64,000 nt of DNA from Euprymna scolopes (lineage: Eukaryota). Where the stretch lies: NCBI GenBank assembly GCA_053919585.1, contig CM132803.1; one strand, 5' to 3'. The position numbers were made by a program, and so were the translations under genes. The notes beneath the pieces were generated by a model that was not told where the DNA came from, did not search any database, and was given only the letters and a program-made list of their open reading frames with translations. Positions 1 through 62,513 of the stretch are shown piece after piece. Each line of letters begins with the position of its first letter. The first letter of the stretch is position 1.

Positions 1-710
1 TTTATTTGATAAGAAATGAAATTATTTTCATTTACATTTATTACTGAAAATTCATTTAGATAATTAATATTAAAATTAATTTTGTAAAATTATATTTTAT
101 AAAATATATTTTTACAATTAATTTTAATTCCTATATATTATATTTCTGTTAATTTATTTAAACAAGAATGTAATCTTGATCAAAACTTTATTTATATTCC
201 CTTATGTTATATTTTTAAAGTGACAGTGCTTAGAAAGTCTAAATGTACAGAAAAACGTATACTTTTTATTTAGAAAATTAAAAATAATATAGTTTTAATT
301 AAAAGGTTAGTAAATTAATATTTTTTACTAAGAACTTGAATTTTAATTTTTCAAATTTAATTTAACTATTATATAGTTTATAGAGAGAAAGAAACGAAAA
401 TAAAACTGTCTCGTTTTTCTTTGTTAGATAGTGTGGAAGTGTAAGAGCCTATTGAAGCAGTAATAGAAAGAAGAAAGCAGTCCTTGATAGAAGAGTAGCT
501 TCCATGGATATTAGTGTTCTGGGTGGTTTTTGATATTTAATTAACAATCACATTTTTTTTTACATGTATATGCGTTTCTATTATTTTTATGAATTTTCTA
601 TTTATTTATTTTATGAAATTATTTTAGTTATCAGTATTTAAAAAATGTTATATAACTGTTTCGTAGTATTCAATAAGAAATAACTGGCCTATCACAAAAA
701 AAAACATATA

Positions 711-850
711 GTAGCCATTACACAGGCATCACACTACATAGGACACATAGTTTCTTTGTAAAAGACATTATAATGTTGGATCATCTGATTATTATAAAGG
801 ATACATCAATTAGTATAACCACCTTGTCTTAAGACGATTTAAGAACAAAG
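711..850 (+). promoter_or_regulatory. Gene 1 conserved upstream motif and putative non-coding first exon
   Basis: AGCCAT 713-718, TAGGA 739-743, splice donor AACAAAG|GTAAGT at 850/851. The same arrangement precedes all 7 genes. TSS not determined. Confidence 0.7.
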
Positions 851-1077
851 GTAAGTTAAAATTTTATTTATGTTCTATAATAAAGAATGCAAACGGCATG
901 CAGATATAAAACATGATCGACCATTGTTATATCAACAAATTTGTTTTATAATAACTAGAACAGCACTTTTTTATCTTTGATAAATTATTCTGAAATATTA
1001 TTCAAAATATTTTCCTATTTTTTCTTTAAATTATTTTTTTTTACAATAGATGAAATAAAATATCAAAAAACAAAATA

Positions 1078-1122
<45 letters not shown>

Positions 1123-1626
1123 CAAATCTCAGTAATATTTCAATATCGTTTGTGCATCCATGTTAAGAATCTTTGTTCATAAATTCTAATACCATGTTGA
1201 TATTGACAATTATATTGTAGACTGACAGATATTTACAATTTTTCCTAGTGTATTATTCATTTGTTTTTTAATCATTTAAAATTAATATTTTAAAAAAAGT
1301 CTAAAATAATTTATTTTTTATTTATAAAATAAATAAAAATTTAGATAGAGTAATTTATTTTTATTGATATTTGCAAGGTAGTATTTGGTATTTAGAAAAA
1401 AATTGACCTGGCTAAATACATTACATGTCTGAGGTTGTTAGTTAAGAATTTTCAGACACACATTTATATATGCATGTATATAATCAAATTTTGCAGCTAG
1501 AAGTCTTTGGTAATATTATCTGCATAGAATGTTTATTTTTGTAGTATTATCAGTCATACTAACATTTTATGACTTATAGTTTCTCAGATGCATAACACTG
1601 TACATGTTTTGTTTTTTTAATTTAAG

Positions 1627-4026
1627 ATGCTGAAGATGTTTCTGAAAACTTGCATTAACTTCTACATCTTACACCTTTGTGTGTGTATGGATCTCACTTA
1701 CTATGTGGAAGAAGGGAAAAGTCCAGGTACTTACCTGGGAGATGTTGCTACTGACTCTCTTGTCTTGAAGGACATATCACCTCAAGATGCTCATCAAATT
1801 AGTTTTGGTCTTTTGCAAAAAGGTGCCACTGGCAGTTCACCATTATTCCGAATCTCTGAGAAATCTAGCAAACTCTACACTGCCCAAACATTAGATGCTG
1901 AATCACTTTGCCTTTTCAATAAAGAATGCTTTCAAATGGTTGACGTAGCAGTGAGGAAAGGAACCACTGTTTTCAAATTGTTAGAAATCAAAGTTATCAT
2001 TAAAGATATCAATGATCATCAACCAGAATTCCTTGAAAAACAAGCAACTCTTAAGTTTAGTGAAGATGACCGAAAAGGGGCCAGAAGATCAATTCCAAAT
2101 GCGATTGACAAAGATGTTGGAATTATTAATTCTAAAATAACCTATGAGCTTATAAAACATAGTCAACAATCTTTTTCTTTGTTTGTATCTAAAAGTGTTG
2201 ATGGTGAATCAAAATTGAGTATAATTTTAGAAAAACCTCTTGATAGAGAAGTAAAAGACTCTTATATGCTTCAAGTGATTGCAAAAGATGGAGGTTCTCC
2301 ACCTAAAGAAAGTGTTTTAAATGTTGACGTTATTGTCACAGATGTTAATGACAATATTCCTGTTTTCTCACAGAAGGTTTACAATGTCTCAATTCAACAT
2401 AATCATGAAGAAATTAAACCTGTTACTGTATTGTCTGCTACAGATTTGGATTCTGGAATTAATGGCCGAATATATTACCATACAAATATGAAAACAAATG
2501 AAATGACAAGAAATGCTTTTAAATTAAATGAACAAACAGGTGAAATATTTCTAAATAATAAAGTTACTTTAAGAAAAGATTTGATTTATGAATTGTATGT
2601 TGAAGCTTCAGATGGGGGGAAACCTCCCTTGAGTGCATTGGCAAAAGTTTTCATAAATGTGATAAATGAACAAAATAATGCCCCAATTATTGATGTAAAT
2701 TTTTTCTCAACATCAAAGGAAAACACAGTTGATGTTTCTGAAAATATAAAAGTTGGTAGTTTCATTGCTTATGTGAAAGTAAGTGATGAGGATGCTGGTC
2801 AGAATGGAGAGGTGAACTGTGAAATAAAACATGATAAATTTCAATTGCAAAACATGGGAACCAAGAAATACCAAGTTATAGTGAAAACTCTTTTAGACAG
2901 GGAAACTGAAGATCATCACAGTATAATTATCAAATGTCAAGACAAAGGATCTCCTCCTCTTCAAAGCAAAAGGACATTTTCTGTACATGTGATTGATGTT
3001 AATGATGTAGAACCAGTGTTTTCTAAACAATTATTTAAATTCTTCATTGATGAAAACCAAAGATCGAAAATTCCTATTGGCACAATCAATGCCACAGATC
3101 CAGACTTGGGACTTGGAGGTAAACTGTCTTTTTCTTTAGTGAGCACCAATAAACAATTTGTACCATTTCGAATCACTGAAAATGGATTAATCTCTTCAAT
3201 TATGTCTTTAGACCATGAGTTTCAAGATACTTATAATTTTGAAGTGTTTGTAAAAGACAAAGGAAGTCCATCATTGAATAACACAGTGAATGTGATTGTT
3301 AAGGTGAGAGATGAAAATGATAATGCTCCATATTTCACATTTCCCAGTGTTAATCCTTATAATATGGATGTAACATATTACCCGCATCATACAAAGAACA
3401 TCAGCCAGATAAAGGCATCAGACAGTGACAGTCAAGAGAATGCATTTCTAAAATATGAAATAATCAGAGGCAATAGCAAACAGATATTCAGCATCAACCA
3501 GTACACTGGTTTGTTATGTTCAACTCATGTCCTAAGCCAACAAGATGCTGGCTCATATGAGCTGGAGTTTCTAGTGAAGGACAGTGGTAGCCCAGTTCTA
3601 TCAGCCAGAACTACTGTATATTTGACACTGACCGTAAGCAACAAGACATCAGAAATGTTAAATGCTGTTAACATCAAAAAAGATAACAAGATCCACCTGA
3701 CTTCAGCAATTATCATTGTGTCTGTAGCAGTGACAATAGCTGTGATCATTACAGCTTCAATCTCAGTGTGTATCCTTCGCTGTTGCAATCCTCGAAGCGT
3801 TCCAGTAGCAGAAGGTGGATATGTGAGTAGTGGTCAGAGACATTTAATAAGTCCTCCTTACCCAGCCAATCCTTGGTCTAATGTTGCTCTTCCTACAAGT
3901 GATGCAGTTGATATGAGAAGAAGCAGTCAACCACCAACACCCAGAATGCAAACCCATCCTTACGCTCAACAGATGTTACCATCACAAGCATCAAAATCAC
4001 AAGCACCTGCAGACTCTGTTTCACAG
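1627..4026 (+). CDS. Protocadherin gene 1, large exon (signal peptide, EC1-EC6, TM, proximal cytoplasmic tail)
   Basis: Cadherin motifs DINDHQP, LDRE, DVNDN, AxDxDxG, DxGxP; hydrophobic TM AIIIVSVAVTIAVIITASISVCIL; phase-0 donor CAG|GTGAGT. Spliced product ~950 aa. Confidence 0.95.
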
Positions 4027-4152
4027 GTGAGTGGAATATCCATTATTATTTTACATATATTTATTTACATTTTTATTTGTATTAATTTGTAAATGATTAT
4101 CATGATTTTTCTCATTGTTTTAATTTGATTCATGTTTTACTATTCTATTTAG

Positions 4153-4315
4153 ATGTATATTCAAGATGTGGCATTGCCATCTGGTAGTGACAGAAGTCAG
4201 AAAAAAGTTGGCAGAATGCAAAACTATTCTAGTAGAAATTCTATAAAATCTTCACATAATGATGACAGACAACGTTGGAATGATAGAAACCCAGGACTAA
4301 TTGAAGGCATGACAG
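4153..4315 (+). CDS. Protocadherin gene 1, cytoplasmic exon A (MYIQDVALPSG...)
   Basis: TTTAG acceptor, ACAG|GTGAG donor, 163 nt open in frame, homologous exon in all paralogs. Not in the ORF track. Confidence 0.9.
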
Positions 4316-6239
4316 GTGAGTTATGAGAGAAAACTGTTTCTATATACTTGTAACCAGACAGGAAGGTTGTTTTTGTCACAATCCTGCTTCATGAGATCAA
4401 CTAGTGTAACTAGGCTGTTTCCAGTCCCTAAACCCAGGGACCCTTCAAAATGTAACCAGACACTTACTTGTGACTGGAACTACCACTCTGATGCTCATAG
4501 CGCACAAAACTTGCACAACCCTAAGTCTGTGTGGCAATACTCTAAACTCGTGGGTTGGCTGTCTGTTGTCAGATGCTGTGGTTGAGTTTTGGCTTCTCTT
4601 AGTTGTAGTTTAGTATCAGGTTCTGTAAATAACTGTGTTTTCAAATCAAAACCATTCAATAATCAATGATAACTCAGAGATCATTTTCTTATAAAAGAGA
4701 ATAATTATTCATAAATATTTCAGGGTACACTTTGTGCAAAGGAAAGTCAGATTTTTGGGGTTCTTAACAATTTCAAGATGCAGGATTTTTAACTTGTTCA
4801 GACAGCTTCTCGATAGGAGGATGGAAAAAAATGCTTTTTCCACTTAGCTCTTTGGGGGAGATATCCAGCCCTGTGCAGGAGCCCAAAGCTGAAGTGTACT
4901 CTTCGATGGCCAGCACACAAGTTATCTGCCAAAATTAAACGGTTTTATCAATTTGTCGTTTCCCTTTCTTTCTAGGCCAGATTACCATTTCTTCCTCCGT
5001 CATTTGGAGATTACCATTTCTCCCTCTGATCTCTTTTTTCTTTCTCTTTCTTAAACCCCTTTTTCTCTTTCCCTCTCTTCTCCTTTGTTCTAAAGAAAGT
5101 TTATTATTATAGCAAAACTTTCTGTTAGGAGGTGGGGGTCCCTCACTTGATACAAGCCATATGATAATCATATATAAGTTCTGTGTTGCATAATATTTCA
5201 AGAAAATTTTCCTTTATCAGGTGTGTTTGACATAGTTATTTATGGTTTGTTTTCATATAAATCAACACTTGTAATAAAAACTTGGTAAGTGGTATATTTT
5301 AGAATAAATTCAAAGACTACTAAAATAGTTTTTTTTAAATGTTCTCTGCTTATTTAATTTAGCATTTATTTTATAGATTTCCTATTTATAAATTATAAAA
5401 ATTTGGATATATTATTGAGTTGATTAACGTTTCTTTCCCCTAGATTAAACTATCCCTCAATTTTGGAATTGGGTTATAAAAAAAACCTTTTTTTAATCAT
5501 TTTAATAAACCATCATTTGTAAATAACTAATTAAGTTATCCATTTGTTTACAAAATTTCTATCTATGACTTTTATTCTTTCACTGAATATTTATCACCTA
5601 CCCGCTTTTATTCTATACGTCATCTATGACTCACTTCTGTACAATGCTTTCTCTCTGTTTATTAACAATTGATGATAAAAAATGAAAGATTGAAATATGA
5701 ACAAAAGGAAATGTCACCACAAATAGCAATCCTATTTCTTATAATTGGAAAAGAAAAGTAGCAGAGTTATAACATGTAGAAAGAAGCTAATTTTCAGATT
5801 TTAAACTTTTATTTTTTATATCCAACTAGCTTTGTAAACAAATGTTTTCCCCCTGATTCAAACAATTTAACCTAAACTCAATGGGTTATCTCATAGAAAA
5901 GAAAGACCTCATAATTCTATGCTAATTTGCTAATCAAAGAATGGATATGAATATATATTTATACATATAATACAAAATTCATATTTATTCTTGATTTTGG
6001 ATATTGCTCCCAGACATTTTATAATTTGTAATACATTTCAGTTATTTGCTAACTTTAAACCTGAGCAAGTATAATAATCACCAGTTGCATAAATAAAACA
6101 TAATGTTCCTTTGAAAGTAATCATAATCTTTATTTAAATGTAACAAAACTTTGCAAACAGTTTACAATAGCTCAGTGTCTGGGCTTAAATTCATATAGAA
6201 CCCAATTTTAGTTTAATAAGTAGAGCTTATTCCTACATT

Positions 6240-7110
6240 GTAAACAGCATAGACTTGTCTGTGTTATGCAGGAAGGCCTTGAAAATTGCTTAATACATGG
6301 GAGTAATTGGAATAACACTCACTGTCATAAAAGCAGTCAAATCTTCACATAGGGGCAGAAGCAATGAGACCCTGAAAGGATTAATGCCAGTGACAATGAC
6401 TGAATTTAAAATTTGCCTGTGTTTTTTGGAAAGTGTAAACCTGTATTTTTATAAGCTATCTCGGTGGGGTAATGGAATATAAATTCGACTTGAAACTAAT
6501 ATTGTAGTTTATTATTAAATGAATTGAGAAAGTTTTGATCATGTATCAGCTGAGCGCGGTGACAAACATAGTGTGTGATCCCTATGCATCTTACAGGCAA
6601 TGCATTCACAACTCTGTCAGAAACTGACTGAGGAAAGAAAGGTGGATTTTGCTTTCATTAAGAGAGACCTATTTACATAAATTACATCAAACTTCTATGC
6701 AGCACACACATATTTTATAGTCCAGGTAAAACTGTGGATGTTTTGTGGGTGGATCTGCAGAACCATTCTTGATCATGTATAACAGCTCTATGCACTTCTT
6801 TCTGAATGGAGATGAACATTCCTAGCTTGAGCAAAGAAAAACCAGATGAAAACCATCAGGATAAAGTGTTTTAAATGCAATGGACCAAACCACTTAACCA
6901 GAGATTTTCTCATTTGACATGGTAGAAGAGCACTGGACCACTAACTTCAGAAAAGTGATACTCATTGTTTTCAATGTAGTTAATGGGTCATGTTTATCAG
7001 AACTGCCTGAGGGAAAGTTATGCACCACATATTTCTCCAGACAAAATTTGAACTTAGCACTATCAACCATAAGAATAGATATGTGCAAAAAAAAAGTTAT
7101 GGTGCAATAG
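6240..7110 (+). mobile_element. Decayed Gypsy-type LTR retrotransposon relic (gag, start of protease)
   Basis: Degenerate zinc knuckles CFKCNGPNHLTRDF (from 6867) and CFQCS..GHVYQNC (~6965-7005); gag-like QKLTEERKVDFAFIKRDLFT; stops and frameshifts. Ends approximate. Confidence 0.6.
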
Positions 7111-9751: not shown

Positions 9752-9904
9752 GTAGCCATTTTAAAGACTGCATATAACATAGGACTGCTGGATTAATATA
9801 TAGCTGAAACAAAGAGAAACATGTCACTATGATGAAGTAGTATTGTTCATATTCACTGTTCACAGAGTTGCTGTTATATAGTATAAACAGCTTTCAGAAC
9901 AAAG
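9752..9904 (+). promoter_or_regulatory. Gene 2 conserved upstream motif and putative non-coding first exon
   Basis: AGCCAT 9754-9759, TAGGA 9780-9784, donor AACAAAG|GTAAGT at 9904/9905. Confidence 0.7.
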
Positions 9905-10328
9905 GTAAGTTGTTTTTATCTAAGTTTACTATTTTTATTTGTACTAGTAAAAAAACAGAAACTCATCCTATAAAAATTAATTGTGTGATATTTATCATCA
10001 GTTATAATGTATAGAAAATGTATAGTCTATATTAATTTAATCAAAATAACTATTTTGTATATACATTTTGAATGATGTTTACTATTCAATCAGCATTCTG
10101 TTGGGTAAAAATTGTATTTTTTAATGTTTTTATTTCTGTTGATTAATATTTTAAACTTGTATTCTACCTGTAATCGGTACATCTTAAATTTTTAACCCCA
10201 CTTTTTAACATGATTTTCCTTGATTTTCGTTAAGACTTTAAATTAAAATACTTGAATGTTTGTGTATCTAGAATTACTTTCTATCTATTCATTCGAATAT
10301 GACATTTTTTGTTTTGATATCCAATTTT

Positions 10329-10741: not shown

Positions 10742-10874
10742 CACCTAGTCAAAAAATACATTTTCATTCTAAAGTATTTTTTATTTCATATTTCAGTGAT
10801 TGCAATCTGTCATCATAATGATCGCTAATTATCATGTGATTAGTCAAAAACAATCGGAATCATCAATTACAATA

Positions 10875-13268
10875 ATGTTAACTGCATTTACTTTGATCTT
10901 CCTATTGCATTTGTCTGAGTGCATAGACCTCATATATTATGTTGAGGAAGGGAAGAGTCCTGGCACCTATTTAGGAGATATAGGTATTGATTCGGAAGTG
11001 ATGAAAGACACAGCTCCAGAAGAAAAGAAGAAAATTACTTTTAGTCTACTGCAACAAGGCTTCACTGGTACGTCTCCAATGTTTAGAATTTCAGAAAAAT
11101 CAGGAAAACTCTACACAGCTCAAACTCTAGATGCTGAGACTATTTGTACTTTTAAAAAAGAATGTTTTAAAATGGTTGACATTGCTGTTCAAAAAGCAAC
11201 AACTGTTTTTAAATTGTTAGAAGTGAAAGTGATTATACAAGACATTAATGATCATCAACCTGAATTTCCAGATAAACAAGTTAATATTGAATTTGAAGAA
11301 AATGATGTTCCTGGAACAAAGATATTAATTCCAAATGCAATAGATAGAGATGTTGGCATTCTCAATTCTCAAATAACCTACCACTTAAAAAGAAACAAAG
11401 ACGAACCTTTTTCATTATCAGTTGCAAAAAACGTGGATGGTACATCAAGATTGGATATAAATTTAGAAAGTCAACTTGACAGAGAAGTAAAGGACTCCTA
11501 CAAGATTCAGGTGATTGCAAAAGATGGTGGATCTCCCCCAAAACAAAGTACATTAGATGTTCTTATTACAGTGACAGATGTCAATGATAATGCTCCAATC
11601 TTTACTCAAAATGTTTATAATGTTACTGTTAACAACATGGTTGATACTAATAAAGCTGTGGCAACATTATCGGCAAAAGATTTGGATTCAGGTAAAAATG
11701 GAATGATTTCATATTATTTTAGTAGTAAAACTTCAGATATTGGCAAAAACATTTTTTCAATTAATGAAGATTCTGGAGAAATATTTTTCAATAAAAAGAT
11801 AGAATTCATGCAGCAATCAACATATGAACTATATGTTAAAGCCGAAGATAAAGGTGACCCTCCACTCAGTTCTATTGTAATGGTTGTAGTAAATTTGATT
11901 AATCAGCAGAATAATCCTCCAAGTATTAAAGTAAATTTTGTTTCAACATCAAAGGACAACACAGTTGATATTTCTGAAGACATAAAAGTTGGTAGTTTCA
12001 TTGCATACGTGAAAGTAATTGATACGGATATTGGCAATGATGGAGAGGTTAGTTGTTATCTTTCACATAAAAAATTTCAGCTTCGCAATATGGGCACACA
12101 GAAATATCAAGTTATAGTAAAAGATTATTTAGACAGAGAGAGGAATGACCATCATGATATTATCATCGATTGTAAAGATAAAGGAAATCCTCCATTGAAA
12201 AGTAGAAGTAAATTTTCAGTCCAAGTGATGGATGTGAATGATGAACAGCCACAATTTTCTAAACAATTATTTAAATTCTTCATTGATGAAAACCAGAGAT
12301 CAAAAATTCCTATTGGCACAATCAATGCCACAGATCCAGACTTGGGACTTGGAGGTAAACTGTCTTTTTCTTTAGTGAGCACCAATAAACAATTTGTACC
12401 ATTTCGAATCACTGAAAATGGATTAATCTCTTCAATTATGTCTTTAGACCATGAGTTTCAAGATACTTATAATTTTGAAGTGTTTGTAAAAGACAAAGGA
12501 AGTCCATCATTGAATAACACAGTGAATGTGATTGTTAAGGTGAGAGATGAAAATGATAATGCTCCATATTTCACATTTCCCAGTGTTAATCCTTATAATA
12601 TGGATGTAACATATTACCCGCATCATACAAAGAACATCAGCCAGATAAAGGCATCAGACAGTGACAGTCAAGAGAATGCATTTCTAAAATATGAAATAAT
12701 CAGAGGCAATAGCAAACAGATATTCAGCATCAACCAGTACACTGGTTTGTTATGTTCAACTCATGTCCTAAGCCAACAAGATGCTGGCTCATATGAGCTG
12801 GAGTTTCTAGTGAAGGACAGTGGTAGCCCAGTTCTATCAGCCAGAACTACTGTATATTTGACACTGACCGTAAGCAACAAGACATCAGAAATGTTAAATG
12901 CTGTTAACATCAAAAAAGATAACAAGATCCACCTGACTTCAGCAATTATCATTGTGTCTGTAGCAGTGACAATAGCTGTGATCATTACAGCTTCAATCTC
13001 AGTGTGTATCCTTCGCTGTTGCAATCCTCGAAGTGTTCCAGTAGCAGAAGGTGGATATGTGAGTAGTGGCCAGAGACATTTAATAAGTCCTCCTTACCCA
13101 GCAAATCCTTGGTCTAATGTTGCTCTTCCTACAAGTGATGCAGTTGATATAAGACGAAACAGTCAACCACCAACACCCAGAATGCAAACCCATCCTTACT
13201 CAAGCAATCAGCAAATGCTGTCATCTCAAGCACCAAAATCACAGCCACCACCAGACTCTGTTTCACAG
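10875..13268 (+). CDS. Protocadherin gene 2, large exon
   Basis: Six EC repeats plus TM; acceptor TTTCAG at 10796; ATG 10875 gives a signal peptide like the paralogs (in-frame ATG at 10818 is an alternative); donor CAG|GTAAGT. Confidence 0.93.
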
Positions 13269-14142
13269 GTAAGTTATATTTTTTTTATATGTTTTGTCAA
13301 ACTATCGCATTTCATGAGTGTGGATATAAAGATTCCTATGAAATTTGTTACATTTATTTAATTTGTTAATATTTTTATTGTTTTATAAATATAAATGTTG
13401 ATATATCGTCATTTATGTGCTGAAATTTCAAATGTGTGGAACCAGAAAACAATTCAGATAAACAGCATTTTTTTTATTAAAATCTATTTTTTTAGGTACT
13501 CAACGCCATAATAACCCATAATCTTTCTCCAGTTCCGTGAATACTAGTCCAATTTACATCTAGAATACCATATCCATATGCTTTCAGTATTCTACTAACT
13601 TTTTTTACTTATTTCTTTTTCATGTTGTTTTGATCTTCATTTCATTTCTGTACTTGGTTTCTTCTTTAAATCCACCGTTTGTTTTGCCATTTAATGCATT
13701 TATTGACAACTGTCTTAACAACACTTACTTGAAATTATATTTTTTAATAATTTATACTAACGCATATTATTCACCATGTCAAATATGTTGAATAGAAATA
13801 ATAACTTGAATAATTTATTGTTGAACTCCCAAATGCCCTGTTGCTTTTGTAACATCTTAAATAAATGTTATGCATGATTTGACAACTTAAGTATTGAACT
13901 GAAAGTAAGTTTTTACATGCATGCAGTGCATAATCTTTATAACCTGATTTCTTGATTTGAAAAAAAGTATTACATACAGCAGCTGTGAATTGAGACCTGG
14001 TTGTTGGACATCATATCTAAGAGTTTACCTTCACACCAATATATGACATCTGAGTTGATTATTAATTTTTATTTATAAATATGTATCAATAAATATAGTG
14101 AAGGAAAATTTGCCCACTTGCTATATTGCAGCTACCTTGCCC

Positions 14143-19249: not shown

Positions 19250-19373
19250 GCAGCCATGACACAGGCAGCATACTATATAGGATAGTTCGTTTTTACATAA
19301 AGTGTAAGAGACACACTATGAGGAAAAATACTGCATTTGATATAACTGAAATTGATGAACAGTTTTAACAAAG
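19250..19373 (+). promoter_or_regulatory. Gene 3 conserved upstream motif and putative non-coding first exon
   Basis: AGCCAT 19252-19257, TAGGA 19278-19282, donor AACAAAG|GTAAGT at 19373/19374. Confidence 0.7.
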
Positions 19374-20190: not shown

Positions 20191-22581
20191 ATGATAGTCA
20201 AAATTTGTATCATTTTATCTTTTGTAAATATTTGTTTGTGTGTGGACCTCACTTACTATGTGGAAGAAGGAAAAAATTCTGGTAATTACCTGGGAGATGT
20301 TGCTGCTGACTCTCTTGTGATGAAGGACATATCATCTCAAAATTATCACCAAATTAGTTTTAGTCTTTTACAAAAAGGTGCAACTGGCAGTTCACCATTA
20401 TTCCGAATTTCTGAAAAATCTGGCAAACTGTACACTGCCCAAACATTAGATGCTGAATCACTTTGCTTTTTCAATAAGGAATGCTTTCAGATGGTTGATG
20501 TGGCAGTCAGGAAAGAAACAGCTGTTTTCAAATTGTTAGAAATTAAAGTCATCATTAAAGATATCAATGATCATCAGCCTGAATTTCCTGAGAAAAAGGT
20601 TGACATAAAATTTGATGAAGGCTACAAAAAAGATGCCAAAGTATTAATACCTAGTGCTTTTGACAAAGATGTTGGGATTATTAATTCTAAGATAACATAC
20701 GAGCTTGAAAAACAAAGCAATGAACCTTTTTCTTTGTTTGTATCTAAAAGTGTTGATGGTTCTTTAAGATTGAGTATCAATTTAGAAGGCCCTCTTGACA
20801 GAGAAATCAAAGATAATTACATGATCAAAGTCATTGCTAAAGATGGAGGCTTACCAACAAAACAAAGTGCTTTAAATGTTCACATCACAGTAACAGATGA
20901 TAATGATAATTTCCCAATTTTCTCACAGAAAGTTTACAATGTCTCAATCCAACATAATCATGAAGAAGTAAAACCTGTTACTGTATTGTCTGCTACAGAT
21001 TTGGATTTGGGAAAAAATGGAAAAATTTTATATCACATCAGTGTGAAAACAAATGAAATGACAAGAAATGCCTTTAAATTGAATGAAAAAACTGGAGAAA
21101 TATTCCTTAAAAAGAAAATCACTTTGAGAAAAGATATAATGTATGAATTATATGTTGAAGCATCGGATGAAGGTAGTCCACCATTAAGTTCATTATCAAT
21201 GGTTTTAATAAATGTGATAAATGAACAAAATAATGCTCCAATTATTGATGTAAACTTCTTCTCAACATCAAAGGAAAATACAGTTGATGTTTCTGAAAAT
21301 ATAAAAGTTGGTAGTTTCATTGCTTATGTGAAAGTAAATGATGAGGATGCTGGTCAGAATGGAGAGGTGAACTGTGAAATAAAACATGATAAATTTCAAT
21401 TGCAAAACATGGGAACCAAGAAATACCAAGTGATAGTGAAAACTCTTTTAGACAGGGAAACTGAAGATCATCACAGTATAATTATCAAATGTCAAGACAA
21501 AGGATCTCCTCCTCTTCAAAGCAAAAGGACATTTTCTGTACATGTGATTGATGTTAATGATGTAGAACCAGTGTTTTCTAAACAATTATTTAAATTCTTC
21601 ATTGATGAAAACCAGAGATCGAAAATTCCTATTGGCACAATCAATGCCACAGATCCAGACTTGGGACTTGGAGGTAAACTGTCTTTTTCTTTAGTGAGCA
21701 CCAATAAACAATTTGTACCATTTCGAATCACTGAAAATGGATTAATCTCTTCAATTATGTCTTTAGACCATGAGTTTCAAGATACTTATAATTTTGAAGT
21801 GTTTGTAAAAGACAAAGGAAGTCCATCATTGAATAACACTGTGAATGTGATTATTAAGGTGAGAGATGAAAATGATAATGCTCCATATTTCACATTTCCC
21901 AGTGTTAATCCTTATAATATGGATGTAACATATTACCCGCATCATACAAAGAACATCAGCCAGATAAAGGCATCAGACAGTGACAGTCAAGAGAATGCAT
22001 TTCTAAAATATGAAATAATCAGAGGCAATAGCAAACAGATATTCAGCATCAATCAGTACACTGGTTTGTTATGTTCAACTCATGTCCTAAGCCAACAAGA
22101 TGCTGGCTCATATGAGCTGGAGTTTCTAGTGAAGGACAGTGGTAGTCCAGTTCTATCAGCGAGAACTACTGTATATTTGACACTGACCGTAAGCAACAAG
22201 ACATCAGACATGTTAAATGCTGTTAACATCAAAAAAGATAACAAGATCCACCTGACTTCAGCAATTATCATTGTGTCTGTAGCAGTGACAATAGCTGTGA
22301 TCATTACAGCTTCAATCTCAGTGTGTATTCTTCGCTGTTGCAATCCTCGAAGTGTTCCAGTAGCAGAAGGCGGATATGTGAGTAGTGGTCAGAGACATTT
22401 AATAAGTCCTCCTTACCCAGCAAATCCTTGGTCTAATGTTGCTCTTCCTACAAATGATGCAGTTGATATGAGAAGAAGCAGTCAACCACCAACACCCAGA
22501 ATGCAAACACATCCTTACGCTCAACAAATGTTACCATCTCAAGCCTCAAAACTACAACCGCCTGCAGACTCTGTTTCACAG
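20191..22581 (+). CDS. Protocadherin gene 3, large exon
   Basis: Signal peptide, six EC repeats, TM; donor CAG|GTAAGT. Confidence 0.95.
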
Positions 22582-22814
22582 GTAAGTGAAATATTTCATA
22601 ATATTGCACATTGATTTGCATTTTTTGATTAGTACGGTTTTGTAAATGATTTTTATTCAAATGTATTTTATTTAAAATTTTAAAATTTTTCTAATATTTA
22701 AAAAAATTTTTTAGCTTATTTTTCAATTTTGACTTTATATTATGTTTTTCTCATTACATATACACATGATTTACCTTTGATTGTTATTTATTCATGCTTT
22801 ACTATTCTATTTAG

Positions 22815-31190: not shown

Positions 31191-31332
31191 NNNNNNNNNN
31201 NNNNNNNNNNNNNNNNNNNNNNNNNNNNNNNNNNNNNNNNNNNNNNNNNNNNNNNNNNNNNNNNNNNNNNNNNNNNNNNNNNNNNNNNNNNNNNNNNNNN
31301 NNNNNNNNNNNNNNNNNNNNNNNNNNNNNNNN
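31191..31332. other. Assembly gap (142 N)
   Basis: Run of N within gene 3 intron 3. Confidence 1.
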
Positions 31333-33233: not shown

Positions 33234-33388
33234 GCAGCCATTGCATAGTGAACATGCTACATAGGACTGCTGTCTTATGTATAAGCCAGAGCACAGATGT
33301 AATACATTTTAAAATGGGACTATCTTTGCATCGGAAGTGTCTTTGTTGATAACATTGCGATTGTGTCTGCCTGGGTTTAAAAGCAAAG
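33234..33388 (+). promoter_or_regulatory. Gene 4 conserved upstream motif and putative non-coding first exon
   Basis: AGCCAT 33236-33241, TAGGA 33262-33266, donor AGCAAAG|GTAAAT at 33388/33389. Confidence 0.68.
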
Positions 33389-33961
33389 GTAAATATTTTA
33401 ATTGCATTTTTTCTATATTATTTTTTATATAAAAAGATGCAAATAAGAATAGAAAATAATCTTATTACAAGGAATCAACCATCTTGATTAAAACTACGAC
33501 ATTTTAATATCTAACAGCAATTATTATTTTTTTTACTTGATCATTTAATTGAGGTAAAATTATGTATCCTGTCCAATATTCATAAAATTTTCCTATCTGT
33601 TTTTTTACCAATTGTTCTTTGTTAATATTTTCTTACCAAAATCTGAAAAAATATGCTATTATTGTTATAGCTATGACAGCATTTTTATTATTCATAACGT
33701 ATACAATATCTTGCTATTGTTTTTGTGTACATTTTTAAAAATTAAAATTATTAAAATTAATAATTAAAATTACAAATTAGTTAGTCTTAGTAGAATATTT
33801 AAATAATTGATTATTTGAAAAAGTAATTGATTAAAAAAATTTCGAAAATGTTTTAAAAAATGTAATCATGTTTTTATAATTAATAAATGTTTAATAATTT
33901 GTAATTGCATTTACATTTCAGAAAAACATTCAAAGATTTCAAACGATACATATTTCATGGA

Positions 33962-36361
33962 ATGATGCTTCCCCAAATATTTGTTGTTTTCTATCTATTA
34001 AAGATTTGCTTATGTGTTGATCTCACTTACAATGTGGAAGAAGGCAAAAGTCCAAATACATATGTGGGAGACATTGCTGCAGATTCGCATGTCATGAATG
34101 ATATTTCAACTGAAGATCATAACTTGATTAGTTTTGGTCTCTTACAAAAAGGTGCTTCTGGCTCATCTCCATTGTTCAAGATCTCCAAAAAGTCTGGGAA
34201 ATTATACACAGCTCAAACTTTAGATGCTGAATCACTTTGTTTTTTTAAAAAACAGTGTTTTCAGATGGTAGATGTGGCTGTTAGAAAAGCAACAACCGTG
34301 TTCAAATTATTAGAAATCAAAATAATTATAAATGATATAAATGACCATCAGCCAGAGTTTTCTGATAAACTCATCAAAGTTGACTTTGAAGAAAATGATA
34401 GTAAGGGAACAAAAAAATCAATTCCGAATGCAATTGACAAGGATGTTGGTATTGTTGATTCTCAGATTACTTATGAATTAAAAAAAGAGAAAGAGGAACC
34501 TTTTTCTTTGTTTGTATCTAAAAGTGTTGATGGAACATCAAAGCTAAATTTAGTATTAGAAAAATCTCTTGATCGTGAAGTGAAAGACTCTTATATGATT
34601 CAAGTGATTGCCAAAGATGGTGGTTCTCCACCTAAACAAAGTTCTTTAAATGTTCACATCACAGTCACAGACGTCAATGACAATATACCTATATTCACGC
34701 AGAAAATATACAATGTTTCCATACATCATGATCACGAAGACATAAAACCTGTTACGGTATTATCTGCCACAGATTTAGACGCTGGAATTAATGGCCGAAT
34801 ATATTACCATACAAATATGAAAACAAATGAAATGACGAGAAATGCCTTTAAATTAAATGAACAAACAGGTGAAATATTTTTGAATAAGAAAGTTGCTTTA
34901 AGAAAAGATTTGGTTTATGAGTTGTATGTTGAAGCTTCAGATGGGGGGAAACCTCCCTTGAGTGCATTGGCAAAAGTTTTAATAAATGTGATAAATGAAC
35001 AAAATAATGCTCCAATTATTGATGTAAACTTCTTCTCAACATCAAAGGAAAATACTGTTGATGTTTCTGAAAATATAAAAGTTGGTAGTTTCATTGCTTA
35101 TGTGAAAGTAAGTGATGAGGATGCTGGTCAAAATGGAGAGGTGAACTGTGAAATAAAACATGATAAATTTCAATTGCAAAACATGGGAACCAAGAAATAC
35201 CAAGTGATAGTGAAAACTCTTTTAGACAGGGAAACTGAAGATCATCACAGTATAATTATCAAATGTCAAGACAAAGGATCTCCTCCTCTTCAAAGCAAAA
35301 GGACATTTTCTGTACATGTGATTGATGTTAATGATGTAGAACCAGTGTTTTCTAAACAATTATTTAAATTCTTCATTGATGAAAACCAGAGATCGAAAAT
35401 TCCTATTGGCACAATCAATGCCACAGATCCAGACTTGGGACTTGGAGGTAAACTGTCTTTTTCTTTAGTGAGCACCAATAAACAATTTGTACCATTTCGA
35501 ATCACTGAAAATGGATTAATCTCTTCAATTATGTCTTTAGACCATGAGTTTCAAGATACTTATAATTTTGAAGTGTTTGTAAAAGACAAAGGAAGTCCAT
35601 CATTGAATAACACAGTGAATGTGATTGTTAAGGTGAGAGATGAAAATGATAATGCTCCATATTTCACATTTCCCAGTGTTAATCCTTATAATATGGATGT
35701 AACATATTACCCGCATCATACAAAGAACATCAGCCAGATAAAGGCATCAGACAGTGACAGTCAAGAGAATGCATTTCTAAAATATGAAATAATCAGAGGC
35801 AATAGCAAACAGATATTCAGCATCAACCAGTACACTGGTTTGTTATGTTCAACTCATGTCCTAAGCCAACAAGATGCTGGCTCATATGAGCTGGAGTTTC
35901 TAGTGAAGGACAGTGGTAGTCCAGTTCTATCAGCCAGAACTACTGTATATTTGACACTGACCGTAAGCAACAAGACATCAGAAATGCTAAATGCTGTTAA
36001 CATCAAAAAAGATAACAAGATCCACCTGACTTCAGCAATTATCATTGTGTCTGTAGCAGTGACAATAGCTGTGATCATTACAGCTTCAATCTCAGTGTGT
36101 ATCCTTCGCTGTTGCAATCCTCGAAGTGTTCCAGTAGCAGAAGGCGGATATGTGAGTAGTGGTCAGAGACATTTGATAAGTCCTCCTTACCCAGCCAATC
36201 CTTGGTCTAATGTTGCTCTTCCTACAAGTGATGCAGTTGATATGAGAAGAAGCAGTCAACCACCAACACCAAGAATGCAAACCCATCCTTACTCAAGTGC
36301 TCACCATATGCTCTCCCCTCAAGCACAAAAACCAGAACAAACTTCAGACTCTGTTTCACAG
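33962..36361 (+). CDS. Protocadherin gene 4, large exon
   Basis: Acceptor TTTCAG at 33921, first in-frame ATG 33962, six EC repeats plus TM, donor CAG|GTAAGT. Confidence 0.94.
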
Positions 36362-36717
36362 GTAAGTTTGTACATTTTGTTTTAACAGAGAAATTGTTTT
36401 AAACGTACATAGATGCATAGAATAATCTTTTAAATGTATAATTGTACTTATTAATTACTTTTGTGTCACATATTTTTAAACATCTTTTAAAATTACCATG
36501 TGAAAACTTTGAATAATTAATAACATCAACTTGTCGACCTAATATACATTTAATTTCATGTGTACAATTTTGCATTATCAAATTAATGTTTTATTATGAA
36601 CGATTAATACCTATAAAACTCATCAATAAAGCTTTATAATTTTCAGTTGTTACAAAATGTAAATATGTTCAGTTTAATTAGAGATATTAAAATATTTTTA
36701 TGTCTTATTTGTGATAG

Positions 36718-41502: not shown

Positions 41503-41650
41503 GCAGCCATGACACAGGCTGCACACTCTTTAGGACTACTGGCCTTTGTTTAATTTTACTCAAAAAGAAACATGATGCAAGAATAGAACCTCATCAAAAG
41601 TATTCCTATTAAATAGCTGTCAGTTCACATGAGCAAGTGTAACACTAAAG
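41503..41650 (+). promoter_or_regulatory. Gene 5 conserved upstream motif and putative non-coding first exon
   Basis: AGCCAT 41505-41510, TAGGA 41531-41535, donor CTAAAG|GTAAGT at 41650/41651. Confidence 0.7.
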
Positions 41651-42577: not shown

Positions 42578-44992
42578 ATGTTTCCTCTAAAGAAGCTGCT
42601 GAAAAATATATGCATAATATTTATTATCATACACATCGGATTGTGCATAGATATTACTTACTATGTTGAAGAAGGAAGACAACCAGGTACATATGTAGGT
42701 GATGTTGCAAATGATTCACAAATGATGAAGGATATCCCGGATTCTGACCACAATCGAATTGAATTTAAGCTTCTTCATAAAGGAGCTACTGGCAATTCCC
42801 CAATATTTAAAATATCAAAAAGAACTGGAAAACTATACACTGCACAAACATTAGATGCAGAATCACTTTGTCATTTTGAAAAAGAATGTTTTCAAACGAT
42901 AAATATAGCAGTTAAAAAATCAACAACTGTTTTCAAGTTATTAGAAATCAAAGTAATAATACAGGACATAAATGATCATCAGCCAGAGTTTCCGGATAAA
43001 CAAATTACTATAGAATTTGAAGAAGGAAATGGTAAAGGTATGAAAAGATCAATTCCAAATGCCATAGACAAAGATGTAGGAATCACTAATTCACAAATTA
43101 CTTATGAACTAAAAAAGACCAAAGATGAACCTTTCATATTATCTACAATGAAAAAAGTTGATGGAACATCTGATCTAAGTATAGAATTAGAAAGAATGTT
43201 AAACAGAGAAAACAAGGATTCTTATACAATTGAAGTAATTGCAAAAGATGGAGGATCCCCACCAAAACAAAGTGTATTGACTGTTCACATTTCAATCACA
43301 GATGTAAATGATAATAAACCAATATTTTCTAAAAAGGTTTATAATGTTTCTATTGACAGCAAACACAATGAAGCCAAACCAGTTGTCATATTATCTGCTA
43401 AAGATTTAGATTCTGGAGAAAATGGCAAAGTAAAATATCATATTACGGCAAAAACAACTGAAAGCACAAGAAAGATATTTGATTTAAATGAAATTACTGG
43501 AGAATTATTTCTACATAAAAAAGACATATTAAATAAAAAAGTGATATATAAGTTATATGTGGAAGCTAGAGATGGGGGTAATCCACCTCTACGATCATTA
43601 GCAATGGTTTTTGTAAATGTTATTAACCAGCAAAATAAAGCTCCATTAATAGACGTAAACTTTTTCTCTACATCCAGAGAAAACACAGTTGATATTTCTG
43701 AGGACATAAAAGTTGGTAGTTTCATTGCTTATGTAAAAGTAAGTGATGAGGATGCTGGTCAGAATGGAGAGGTGAACTGTGAAATAAAACATGATAAATT
43801 TCAGCTTCAGAAGATGGGAATCCTTAAATATCAAGTAATTGTAAAAAGTCATTTAGATCGTGAAAGAGAAGAACAACATGATATTATAATAATGTGTCAA
43901 GACAAAGGATCTCCTCCATTAAAAACTAAAAGCAAGTTCTCAGTTCAAGTGTTGGATGTTAACGATGTAGAACCAGTGTTTTCTAAACAATTATTTAAAT
44001 TCTTCATTGATGAAAACCAGAGATCGAAAATTCCTATTGGCACAATCAATGCCACAGATCCAGACTTGGGACTTGGAGGTAAACTGTCTTTTTCTTTAGT
44101 GAGCACCAATAAACAATTTGTACCATTTCGAATCACTGAAAATGGATTAATCTCTTCAATTATGTCTTTAGACCATGAGTTTCAAGATACTTATAATTTT
44201 GAAGTGTTTGTAAAAGACAAAGGAAGTCCATCATTGAATAACACAGTGAATGTGATTGTTAAGGTGAGAGATGAAAATGATAATGCTCCATATTTCACAT
44301 TTCCCAGTGTTAATCCTTATAATATGGATGTAACATATTACCCGCATCATACAAAGAACATCAGCCAGATAAAGGCATCAGACAGTGACAGTCAAGAGAA
44401 TGCATTTCTAAAATATGAAATAATCAGAGGCAATAGCAAACAGATATTCAGCATCAACCAGTACACTGGTTTGTTATGTTCAACTCATGTCCTAAGCCAA
44501 CAAGATGCTGGCTCATATGAGCTGGAGTTTCTAGTGAAGGACAGTGGTAGCCCAGTTCTATCAGCCAGAACTACTGTATATTTGACATTGACCATAAGCA
44601 ACAAGACATCAGAAATGCTAAATGCTGTTAACATAAAAAAAGATAACAAGATCCACCTGACTTCAGCAATTATCATTGTGTCTGTAGCAGTGACAATAGC
44701 TGTGATCATTACAGCTTCAATCTCAGTGTGTATCCTTCGCTGTTGCAATCCTCGAAGTGTTCCAGTAGCAGAAGGCGGATATGTGAGTAGTGGTCAGAGA
44801 CATTTGATAAGTCCTCCTTACCCAGCCAATCCTTGGTCTAATGTTGCTCTTCCTACAAGTGATGCAGTTGATATGAGAAGAAGCAATCAACCACCAACAC
44901 CCAGAATGCAAACCCATCCTTACTCAAGTGCTCAACAAATGCTGTCATCACAAGCATCAAAGCCACAACCTATTCACGATTCTGTATCTCAA
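42578..44992 (+). CDS. Protocadherin gene 5, large exon
   Basis: Acceptor TTTCAG at 42547, six EC repeats plus TM, donor CAA|GTAAGT. Confidence 0.94.
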
Positions 44993-45143
44993 GTAAGTAT
45001 GTTTATATCTTTGACTTTCTTGCTTTGATATTTTAAATACATATAATAAAAAATCTTTTCTACAATTTGAAACATTTTGTACTAATATCTTCACCAACTG
45101 AAATTGTCAGTTTGGTCTAATTTCTTTATTTTAATTTTCGCAG

Positions 45144-50280: not shown

Positions 50281-50431
50281 GCAGCCATTACACAGACTAC
50301 ACAATACTCAGGATACTTGGCTCGTGTGAAAAATACAAAATAAATATGTTTCAACATGTAAATATAAAAAGCATCAGTGGTAATCCAGTTGATGTAGCTG
50401 ACATTTGGCATGAGCAGATGTAACAACAAAG
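50281..50431 (+). promoter_or_regulatory. Gene 6 conserved upstream motif and putative non-coding first exon
   Basis: AGCCAT 50283-50288, CAGGA 50309-50313, donor AACAAAG|GTGAGT at 50431/50432. Confidence 0.68.
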
Positions 50432-52044
50432 GTGAGTTTGCCATTAATTTATTTTCCTTCATTTTCTTTGTTAATTGAAATGGATGAAGACGGTAGTAGA
50501 AGGATGGAAGTGCATCGGTTTTGTTATGAATGTGTGTGACTGAAATTTACTAGTGTATAGAACAAAACAGCATAAGACGATTCTCATTGTTTTATTTGGA
50601 TTGTTTAATTCTCTTATTAAACTTGAAAAATTATGTAGTTAAAATAAATACTATATTTAAATTTTTTCAAGTTTTTTTTATTTAACACTTAATAAAATGT
50701 TGGTCTATCAATGTTTTTTTATTCTACTGCTGTAGATATTCGCTAAGTCAGAAGAATCTTTGTATTAACAAAATAATAATAAATCGTTGCTGTCTTAAGG
50801 ATTAATTAATATTAATTTTTTGTTGATAAAGAGAGACTACTGACTTACAAAATAATATTATTACAAAATTTCATGTGTGTGTATATATTTTTTTAAATAG
50901 TATTTTTTTATCTTTTAAATCTAATTATACACATGAAATATTTTATTTTAGAATTATTTTTTTACATTTCATTTTCATTTGGATCTATTTAATTATTATT
51001 AATATTTTGTGAATATTTTTTTTTCAATTGTAAAATTTATACAATATAAAAATCAGTTGTAAAATAAAAGGATTTATACAGTATTTTGAAATACATGTAT
51101 AATTGTGAATTTATTTTAAAATCCTAGTATTTTTATCTTTTATTAATTTAAAATGTATCTAGGATTTTATCATTATTATTTGGAGATTATTTATTGTGCT
51201 GCTTTTTAAAAAAAGTTATAGTATTTAAGTTTAAAATTATATTGTAAACTCCTGTATCTAAATATTAGTTTTTTTTCTTAAATATTTACCATCTACATGT
51301 TCTTTCATACACATCATTATCTGAAACAAGAATTTTAAGAATAATCTATTAGATTAGGATAATAATACACATTGAGTCAATGTTGAAATAATGTTCACAT
51401 ATTATTTAGAGTATATTGATAGTTATATAACACAAACATTTGCATTTAATAAATGAAATATATTAATTAATTAAGAAAAAATATATTGAGTGGCACAAGA
51501 TTATTCTTTAAATTTCACTTTTTAATGGATATTTTTTTTAATTAAATTATTATTAAATAGTTATTCATTAGATACTACAAACAGATAATATATTTAAAAA
51601 GGAAATCGAAGTATTTTTTCATTTCATACACCTTTAAATTTCATTTATTATCTAAATGACTATTAATTTGTCCCTATTTTGCAGGGTCATTTGTTACTGT
51701 TATTATCATTGATTTACATTTAAAATTCTCTTTCTCTATATAAAAAATTATGAACCATCTAATTAATTTTGACTATATGTGTTTATTCTGCATTTACACT
51801 TTTATATAAAGATTAATTTTTAATTCAAGTAAAACCATATTCACAAACTTAAATAGAAACATATGTGATATACTTGTATTATCATTTACTTATGAAAATT
51901 ATTGAAATCATTAAAAGTGTTAGATACTTACTATTTTTTTATGCTTTTTTTTTTTTTTTTTGCTTAAAATTTCAGATGTTGTAAAGAATGGAAGTGATTT
52001 TTTAGGATATTAAACAGTAAATAAAAGATATTATTTTGGTAACA

Positions 52045-54441: not shown

Positions 54442-54623
54442 GTAAATAATTTTTTTTTTTATATATATTATTTTTACAATGGATGTATTTACAATTAAAA
54501 CTGTTTACTTTTATGTCTTTAAATATAAGATTTTGAATATTTAGAAAAAATATCAATGTCCCAATCAATACATTTTCTATTTTTTTTTAATTATAAATAC
54601 AAGAACATAGTGTAGTTAATGTT

Positions 54624-58905: not shown

Positions 58906-59019
58906 GTAGCCATTACTCAGCTAACACAGTAGGTAGGACTTTATACAACTCCAAAAAAAATATATACTACCGGAATATACCAACATCGAAAGTGTACCAG
59001 CTGAATTGTTAAGATTAAA
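58906..59019 (+). promoter_or_regulatory. Gene 7 conserved upstream motif and putative non-coding first exon
   Basis: AGCCAT 58908-58913, TAGGA 58934-58938, donor TTAAA|GTAAGT at 59019/59020. Confidence 0.66.
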
Positions 59020-59966
59020 GTAAGTTGGTATATATTGAGTTTTTTTTTTTTAATTTCCTTTGTCTCTTTTGTCATGTAAATGATGAAAAACATTCTAAAA
59101 TTGAAACTGATGAATATAATAATGGTTGCTTTGTGTATGCTAGTTATTTTGCTGATGAAAAATTTGAATATAATGATTTATTAAGTATTTTTAGAGTCAG
59201 ACTTTATTTTATACACACTTCCTTTTTCCCTTTGTATTATTTATTGTCTTTACAGTGAAATAATATAAAATATTACAAACTCAACAAATAATTGATTATC
59301 AGAATTACAATACATTTCTTTTGGCATGATTGATTTCTTGTTTTTCTTTTTCTTCTTATAGATAGGGAATTTTAACTTTATTTATAAATCAAGTTAAATA
59401 CATATTTTTAGAATTACCTAATATCAAATAAAATTTACAATGATATTATATCATCTTATATCTCAGTTTATGCTATCTTAATAGTGTTCATTTTATAAAC
59501 CTAATTGTAATCATTTTTTTAAAAAAATATTTACTATGACTTTTATTAGTATAACAAATGTCTCATTCATTAGATATATTTTAAAACAAATATTTAAGGA
59601 TTTATATTGATTATTATTGGTATACTTTGTTGAATCATTAAATAATTTATTTAACATTGAAATAATTAAGTTTTTAACAGTGTAAAACAATCTGATAATT
59701 TTTATTTATTCATTACAGATTTTTAAAATGTGAATCGAATGATTATGTGATCAATTTGATTGTTCCTAAAATATAATTAGAAACATTTTTAAAAGATTAT
59801 AAAAATATGGTGCAATATTTTAAATTTCATTTGAGTTTTTTGAAAATACTATTAACTAAAATATTATTTCAAAAACTATTTGTAGATGCTTAATACAATG
59901 TTTTGAATATTTGGATTTCAGAGATGGTCAGCTTATGAATGTGTGAGGGAATTTACTTTTAAAAAG

Positions 59967-62363: not shown

Positions 62364-62513
62364 GTAAGTATGTTTATATCTTTGACTTTCTTGCTTTGAT
62401 ATTTTTAATACATATAATAAAAATCTTTTCTACAATTTGAAACATTGTGATTTAATATCTTCACCAACTTACATTGTCAGTTTGGTCTAATTTCTTTATT
62501 TTAATTTTCGCAG

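Follow-up and report, generated by a model that had tools for sequence, protein, structure and literature searches.

Introduction

In the clustered protocadherin (Pcdh) genes of vertebrates, a short conserved sequence element (CSE) of about 22 bp is present in all 52 promoters (PMC3333863). It is bound by CTCF, carries a CTCF core (CCASYAGRKGGCRSY-like, CGCT-containing) and lies upstream of the transcription start, with one copy per variable promoter in a fixed orientation relative to transcription. Other described systems bear on repeated elements in gene arrays. YY1/Pleiohomeotic (Pho) sites have a GCCAT core (extended context GCCATnTT), are often located just downstream of the transcription start site (TSS), and are implicated in enhancer-promoter looping and Polycomb recruitment. 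Core promoters of the Drosophila type combine an initiator (Inr) with a DPE (RGWYV) at exactly +28 to +32 from the initiator A. In Drosophila Dscam1, selector sequences ahead of variable exons pair with a docking site in the RNA, while the sDscam arrays of chelicerates use alternative promoters.

Coleoid cephalopods expanded their protocadherins to hundreds of genes independently of vertebrates, and the expansion is reported to have been independent between squid and octopus lineages (Albertin 2015, as cited in PMC6339937). The papers we searched describe the arrays, their expression classes and an enrichment of cadherin genes at chromatin-loop anchors, but no shared cis-element. Here, we analysed a stretch of 64,000 nucleotides (the window) from the decapodiform cephalopod Euprymna scolopes (GCA_053919585.1, contig CM132803.1), corresponding to C21:25,234,001-25,298,000 of the 5.9-Gb genome, where C21 is our label for the 126.5-Mb chromosome. 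A preliminary description of the window had proposed a fixed-spacing element, GYAGCCAT-N5-AG-N4-CA-N7-YAGGAY, ahead of all seven protocadherin genes, and had interpreted it as either a shared core promoter or a multi-zinc-finger site allowing equivalent promoters to compete for an enhancer. We find that, as in the vertebrate clusters, a short element occurs once per gene and in the orientation of the gene, but that its sequence is unrelated to the CSE and that it lies within a short non-coding first exon.

Results

The proposed pattern matches exactly seven times in the window, always on the + strand (Table 1), and did not occur in 100 dinucleotide-preserving shuffles. The observation made in the preliminary description is therefore confirmed, including the starts of AGCCAT at 713, 9754 and so on. 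One correction is needed, since the AG at motif positions 14-15, which had been considered invariant, is a variant of the local clade; in most other sub-arrays of the genome this position reads AC, within ...CACAC.... The window contains seven + strand ORFs of 807-853 aa, and each motif lies 671-1755 bp upstream of one of them. The three ORFs that were scanned (genes 1, 3 and 5) are cadherin-repeat proteins (Pfam Cadherin, E ~1e-76, with 5-6 stretches) with an N-terminal Cadherin_2 domain. The exact window protein is not on record, and the closest named homologs are PCDH proteins of the cuttlefish Acanthosepion pharaonis. A consensus splice donor (AAAG|GTAAGT, GTGAGT or GTAAAT) follows 114-155 nt after each motif start, and in a MAFFT alignment of the seven 500-bp regions the motif and the donor are the only conserved blocks. 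In two copies the sequence GCCATGA opens a short upstream ORF, while the other five read GCCATT.

Table 1. Positions of the motif copies, exons and other features in the window.
Feature	Position	Strand	Description	Support
Motif copy 1, gene 1	711..744	+	GTAGCCATTACACAGGCATCACACTACATAGGAC; weaker conservation continues to about 755	Exact pattern match; PWM 56.4 bits
Motif copy 2, gene 2	9752..9785	+		Exact pattern match; PWM 51.9 bits
Motif copy 3, gene 3	19250..19283	+	Reads GCCATGA; opens a 9-codon uORF (19256-19285)	Exact pattern match; PWM 50.1 bits
Motif copy 4, gene 4	33234..33267	+		Exact pattern match; PWM 56.2 bits
Motif copy 5, gene 5	41503..41536	+	Reads GCCATGA; opens a 14-codon uORF (41509-41553)	Exact pattern match; PWM 59.7 bits
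Motif copy 6, gene 6	50281..50314	+		Exact pattern match; PWM 54.1 bits
Motif copy 7, gene 7	58906..58939	+	Weakest copy	Exact pattern match; PWM 34.6 bits
Transcribed non-coding exon 1, gene 1	466..850	+	As far as it could be seen, 5' limit uncertain; 3' end is the donor AACAAAG|GTAAGT after base 850	Contig of RNA run X4 covers 466-850 and stops at the donor; contig of run X3 covers 524-835
Conserved block at the end of exon 1, gene 1	835-850		(G)GATTTAR.A..AG|GTRAGT, last ~15 nt of the exon	Equivalents in other genes
Intron 1, gene 1	851..1626	+	776 nt; contains an (AT)n microsatellite at 1064-1127	Joint 850->1627 with GT..AG ends in an oligo-dT RNA-seq contig of run X4
Large coding exon, gene 1	1627..4092	+	821-aa ORF; ATG is the first codon after the acceptor	ORF, Pfam, RNA joint
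Donor of exon 1, gene 2	9905..9912	+	AACAAAG|GTAAGTTG	Donor consensus
Equivalent exon-1 ends, genes 3-7	after 19373, 33388, 41650, 50431 and 59019			Donor consensus
Coding exon, gene 2	10800..13361	+		ORF
Other coding exons	20191-22614, 33905-36385, 42578-45028, 52036-54498 and 59943-62399			ORFs; Pfam on genes 3 and 5
Assembly gap	31191-31332		142 N between genes 3 and 4	
Pile-up of RNA contigs	3040-3963		Homogenised coding block shared by many paralogs	Contigs of all four runs

To determine how far the element extends, we searched the whole genome. The strict pattern has 16 hits, all on the + strand within 360 kb around the window, while the reversed-pattern control gave 0. Motif copies 6 and 7 recur letter for letter 17,625 bp further on (C21:25284281/25301906 and 25292906/25310531), revealing a recent two-gene tandem duplication that straddles the end of the window. 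Allowing 2 mismatches gives 496 forward and 333 reverse hits, against 89 and 115 for the control; those with at most 1 mismatch that resemble the family consensus are all on C21, and the roughly two dozen on other contigs do not resemble it. These hits reveal a more general family consensus, GCAGCCATTACACACACAnCAYACTTnnTAGGAY. A pattern built on it, GCAGCCATTnnnCACACnnCAnACTTnnTAGGAY, gives 39 hits at up to 1 mismatch and 125 at up to 3 mismatches, with control 0/0 both times, and every hit listed (100 of the 125) is on C21. By contrast, a relaxed 14-base version of the pattern was not informative, since it was swamped by a dispersed repeat (AGCCATGTGCGAGG...) and the control was equally high; this repeat, AGCCATGTGCGAGGTGACATCACAGCGAGGA, is found on many contigs (e.g., C1:139308352 and C2:150096355) and matches by chance. 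A metagenome scan for the motif gave only 3 chance hits in unrelated contigs.

All protocadherin-like ORFs scored in two protein searches are also on C21, with about 470-530 candidates at first look. They form oriented blocks: minus at 3.7-13.5 Mb, plus at 16-27.9 Mb and 74-86 Mb, and minus at 104-113 Mb, and the motif orientation follows that of the genes. In the compact sub-arrays (17-27 Mb), the listed motifs sit 0.9-15 kb upstream of listed ORFs. The block at 3.7-13.5 Mb was missed by the pattern searches because its motif variant carries a 1-nt insertion (AGCCTATTAC). For an unbiased test we used 264 kb of sequence, namely the window plus C21:24.76-24.96 Mb; outside these, the analysis covered 3-kb loci around hits. 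A 47-column PWM found 20 hits of at least 34.6 bits, all on the + strand, and nothing else of at least 12 bits on either strand. The same DNA holds 20 protocadherin ORFs of at least 600 aa, each with exactly one motif 0.67-16 kb upstream. Within these 264 kb the element is therefore present once per gene, co-oriented with the gene, and absent elsewhere.

We next asked whether the element is under selection. Information content is about zero at positions -40 to -1, rises abruptly at positions 0/1 and stays raised to about +45 (TAGGACTGCTGGCTTC). Twenty-five copies from five sub-arrays up to 80 Mb apart align without a single indel; in these copies CCAT (positions 5-8) and AGGA (30-33) are invariant, and CA (20-21) is kept in at least 90%. 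For paralog pairs with at most 60% amino-acid identity in EC1-EC4, the motif is 0.69 identical, compared to 0.47 for fourfold-degenerate sites and 0.29-0.32 (about 0.30) for ungapped flanks, the latter being the random level for this AT-rich DNA. In 25 regions of 300 nt upstream and 300 nt downstream, no other shared word was found except the splice donor, and nothing in the upstream part rose above shuffled controls. The element is more conserved than both fourfold-degenerate sites and its neighbouring DNA; this is purifying selection on a discrete element. Just upstream of the motif in the 104-106-Mb copies there is a short inverted word (ATGGCT...AGCCAT, GGCT...AGCC; sequences L061, ~1540-1550 on the minus strand, and L062) that is not seen in the window copies.

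To shed light on gene anatomy and transcription, RNA contigs were laid out on window positions 401-6300. One contig joins exon 1 directly to the exon that carries the ATG (Table 1), and contigs from two runs of different studies cross the 5' edge of the motif, so that about 190-245 nt upstream of the motif are transcribed in gene 1. Neither run covers 401-465. The run of raw reads had no reads in this region, so the start of transcription is inferred here from assembled contigs rather than from capped 5' ends. The 177 nt immediately upstream of the motif (530-706) are present in about 20 transcriptome-sized runs from 9 studies, and two of those runs are recorded as oligo-dT or polyA RNA. Further downstream, the contigs of all four runs pile up in the homogenised coding block and diverge at 3019, 3463 and 3962/3963, and the depth there says nothing about gene 1. 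The loose ends at 3962/3963 looked like a splice donor, but in fact reflect paralog divergence at the end of this block.

Transcript contigs of homologous genes, found in runs that include the Sepia esculenta larval transcriptome SRR23936171 (PMC10571815), show the same architecture. For one of these (P0095), exon 1 is colinear with C21:84,887,811-84,888,089 at 80% identity and carries the motif homolog GCTGTCAGTACACACACTACACACTTGCTAGGAC, whereas the ortholog in the present genome reads GCTGCCATTAC...GATAGGAC. The motif is retained at 37 of 40 positions, against about 80% in the rest of the exon. At least 62-73 transcribed nucleotides lie upstream of the motif, and the exon ends at GGATTTAGTACTACAG|GTGAGT. 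The S. esculenta transcripts of P0095 (L041-L047) also contain an optional extra non-coding exon of about 160 nt between exon 1 and the coding exon, showing alternative 5'UTR splicing in this family. For a second gene (P0114), exon 1 maps to C21:7,612,638-7,613,011 on the minus strand, 247 kb upstream of its coding exon (C21:7,613,011 to 7,365,171), compared to 0.5-1.6 kb for intron 1 in the window. The motif variant AGCCTATTACATACAACACAYTTTRTAGGAC is internal to the exon, and at least 70-115 nt of colinear transcribed sequence lie upstream of it, including a block of about 45 nt that is nearly identical between the two species. In three genes, then, the motif lies inside the first exon, about 60 to 245 nt from the visible 5' end. 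Exon 1 of P0085 found no match in the genome, and transcripts of P0023, P0098 and P0117 were uninformative or unspliced at the 5' end. The conserved block at the end of exon 1 (also at L070:~1770-1790 and in L076, minus strand) is shared between distant sub-arrays and with S. esculenta transcripts, and may be an exonic splicing signal.

RNAalifold predicts 0 base pairs on the 25 aligned copies, and a tentative AGCAG/CTGCT stem is not kept in several copies. A search of Rfam gave only a chance snoR22 hit in the intron (25.5 bits against a gathering score of 50). The consensus from the 25 aligned copies and from more than 100 listed copies has no CTCF-like core on either strand, and only the half word CCAGCAG appears, in the reverse complement of the 3' extension. 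We also considered that the AG at positions 0-1 might mark an intron end, but there is no polypyrimidine tract, about a fifth of copies read GG, and transcripts are colinear with the genome across the boundary.

Discussion

The interpretation given in the preliminary description is partly supported by our data. The element is real, under selection and present once per protocadherin gene, and it is family-specific rather than a generic promoter word, making it a credible cluster-wide cis-regulatory element. The shared core-promoter reading, with an Inr at AGCCAT and a DPE at GGAY, is not supported, while a role in isoform choice and recognition by a multi-zinc-finger protein remain possible.

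We propose that the motif is a discrete cis-element of about 34-45 bp with a fixed register, with the family consensus (A)GCAGCCATTACACACACAnCAYACTTnnTAGGAC(TGCTGGCT), located downstream of the TSS inside the short non-coding first exon of essentially every clustered protocadherin gene of this decapodiform cephalopod. Most likely, with a probability of about 0.45, it would work at the DNA level as a promoter-proximal, directional binding platform, read in one rigid register by one multi-domain protein or by several sequence-specific DNA-binding proteins. The rigid register across 34-45 bp without base pairing is what one expects from recognition on double-stranded DNA by a multi-domain protein or a fixed protein complex, and fits this better than a flexible RNA-protein site. 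The three conserved blocks are (A)GCAGCCATT, ACACACA.CAYA and TAGGAY(TGCTGG), and a candidate layout is a YY1/Pho-like CCAT half, a CA-rich middle and an AGGAY half; a long C2H2 zinc-finger array is another candidate reader. The platform would give all the otherwise unrelated promoters one common regulatory handle for family-wide activation, silencing or enhancer contact, a role that would be analogous to that of the vertebrate CSE. Our analysis establishes that the element exists, its one-per-gene distribution, orientation and family specificity, purifying selection, its location in a spliced 5' exon, and transcripts that start upstream of it; that a protein binds it, that binding is to DNA rather than RNA, and any role in isoform choice are inferences. 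Since the element is transcribed and kept in mature mRNA, an RNA-level function is equally compatible with its position and strand specificity. A 2026 Micro-C/Hi-C study reports that cadherin genes are enriched at chromatin-loop anchors in coleoids, and that GA/CA-rich motifs occur at anchors (PMC13652810), which is compatible with our reading but not specific to it, as the enrichment is not tied to this motif.

The YY1/Pho core holds in most copies but is not universal. It is replaced in some paralogs (GCATTCATT, GCAGTCATT, GCAGCAATT, GCAGCCAC), with variants that include TCATT, CAATT and CCAC, and in both S. esculenta genes examined (GTCAG and GCCTAT). YY1 can therefore be at most part of the story, and the more widely kept part is ACACACA.CAYACTT..TAGGAC.

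A more far-reaching version, which we consider doubtful, is that cephalopods independently evolved a counterpart of the vertebrate CSE/CTCF system. In this view, a directional DNA site of about 45 bp in the first exon of each of several hundred protocadherin genes would be read by a dedicated, possibly lineage-expanded, zinc-finger or YY1-like architectural protein, which would mediate enhancer contact or default silencing, and thereby combinatorial or stochastic isoform choice in neurons. Single-cell data from bobtail squid describe both ubiquitous and cell-type-restricted Pcdhs, and do not describe stochastic choice (PMC12240821).

The main rival, less likely but possible, is a linear, unstructured 5'UTR RNA element shared by all protocadherin mRNAs, which would coordinate translation, stability or neurite localisation of the whole family via an RNA-binding protein. 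Candidates would be an IGF2BP/ZBP1-type reader of CAUH, CA-rich and GGAC words, or an hnRNP L-type CA-repeat binder. The motif is present in mature spliced transcripts of S. esculenta, and very probably in those of the window species too; it occurs strictly on the sense strand, once per mRNA, at a variable distance from the 5' end, and contains the words CAUU, ACAC and GGAC(U), which resemble the bipartite ZBP1 zipcode and the DRACH site. However, multi-domain RNA-binding proteins usually tolerate variable spacing, whereas the 25 diverged copies show no indels over 34-45 nt, and neither a conserved structure nor an Rfam match was found. In addition, GGAC is GGAT in a substantial minority of copies, which argues against m6A or KH4 GGAC recognition as the universal feature, and nothing else in the 5'UTR is shared.

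It is unlikely that the motif is the core promoter itself, with an initiator within GCAGCCATT and a DPE-like element at GGAY. Conservation does begin abruptly at the motif with nothing shared upstream, CCATT fits the loose mammalian initiator consensus BBCABW, GGACA/GGATA fit RGWYV, and the motif-to-donor distance (114-176 nt) would make a normal small first exon. However, RNA contigs cross the motif from upstream in three genes. Moreover, GGAY starts at motif position 31, i.e., at +29 from the A of CAG (A3) or +25 from the A of CCAT (A7), rather than at +28, most copies read GGACT, whose fifth base violates the DPE consensus, and the first block is replaced in some orthologs.

Very unlikely is a splicing-related RNA signal, either an exonic enhancer that helps the small first exon to splice across introns of 0.7-247 kb or a Dscam-type selector: the motif is CA-rich and exonic, first introns are very long and variable, and the genes sit in a tandem array of similar acceptors, but the distance to the donor varies from 114 to about 230 nt, the separate conserved block directly at the donor is the better enhancer candidate, and neither a complementary copy in the 264 kb nor any predicted pairing was found. 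Equally unlikely is a relic of tandem duplication, or similarity kept by gene conversion or homogenisation, since, although the family expanded by tandem duplication, has a homogenised coding 3' block and includes a recently duplicated 17.6-kb unit, the motif is more conserved than fourfold-degenerate sites next to DNA at random identity, is kept in another species, and forms a 40-bp island in arrays of opposite orientation tens of Mb apart that gene conversion, whose tracts would also carry the flanks, cannot explain.

A single, highly specific, once-per-gene motif gives an immediate and concrete handle on how cephalopods control hundreds of neuronal adhesion genes, as a probe for its binding factor, as a feature to intersect with ATAC-seq, Micro-C and single-cell data, and as a defined target for CRISPR in Euprymna berryi. 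Should it prove to be a choice or looping element, it would be a striking case of convergent regulatory logic between the two large-brained animal lineages; should it be a 5'UTR RNA element, it would define a post-transcriptional regulon for neuronal self-recognition molecules.

Of the described systems, the Dscam1 docking-site/selector arrangement and the chelicerate sDscam arrays share with this locus a repeated element ahead of each variable unit of a tandem array that encodes neuronal recognition diversity. However, no complementary partner was found here (no reverse-strand PWM hit of at least 12 bits in 264 kb), and each unit has its own first exon and presumably its own promoter. Inr plus DPE promoters likewise have two blocks with fixed spacing and a GGAY-type downstream word, but the present element is out of register by one base, lies downstream of the visible transcript starts and is restricted to one gene family. 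With YY1/Pho sites it shares, in most copies, the GCCAT core on the sense strand within the GCAGCCATT block, downstream of the TSS, and the adjacent CA/GT-rich run recalls Combgap-type sites in fly PREs; the flanks do not fit GCCATnTT, the nTT context being absent, and two thirds of the conserved element lie outside any YY1 site. As for the vertebrate CSE, both are short conserved elements with one copy per gene, common to the whole family, in a fixed orientation within tandem arrays of neuronal protocadherin genes, and no reverse-oriented copy was seen here in the 264 kb scanned or among the genome-wide pattern hits listed. The cephalopod element is longer (34-45 bp), has no CTCF-like core, and lies downstream of the TSS in a separate non-coding exon instead of upstream of it, and its host genes appear to be complete units rather than variable exons spliced to shared constant exons. 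We therefore regard it as a family-wide conserved element at each clustered-Pcdh promoter region, comparable to the CSE but with a different sequence, position and lineage.
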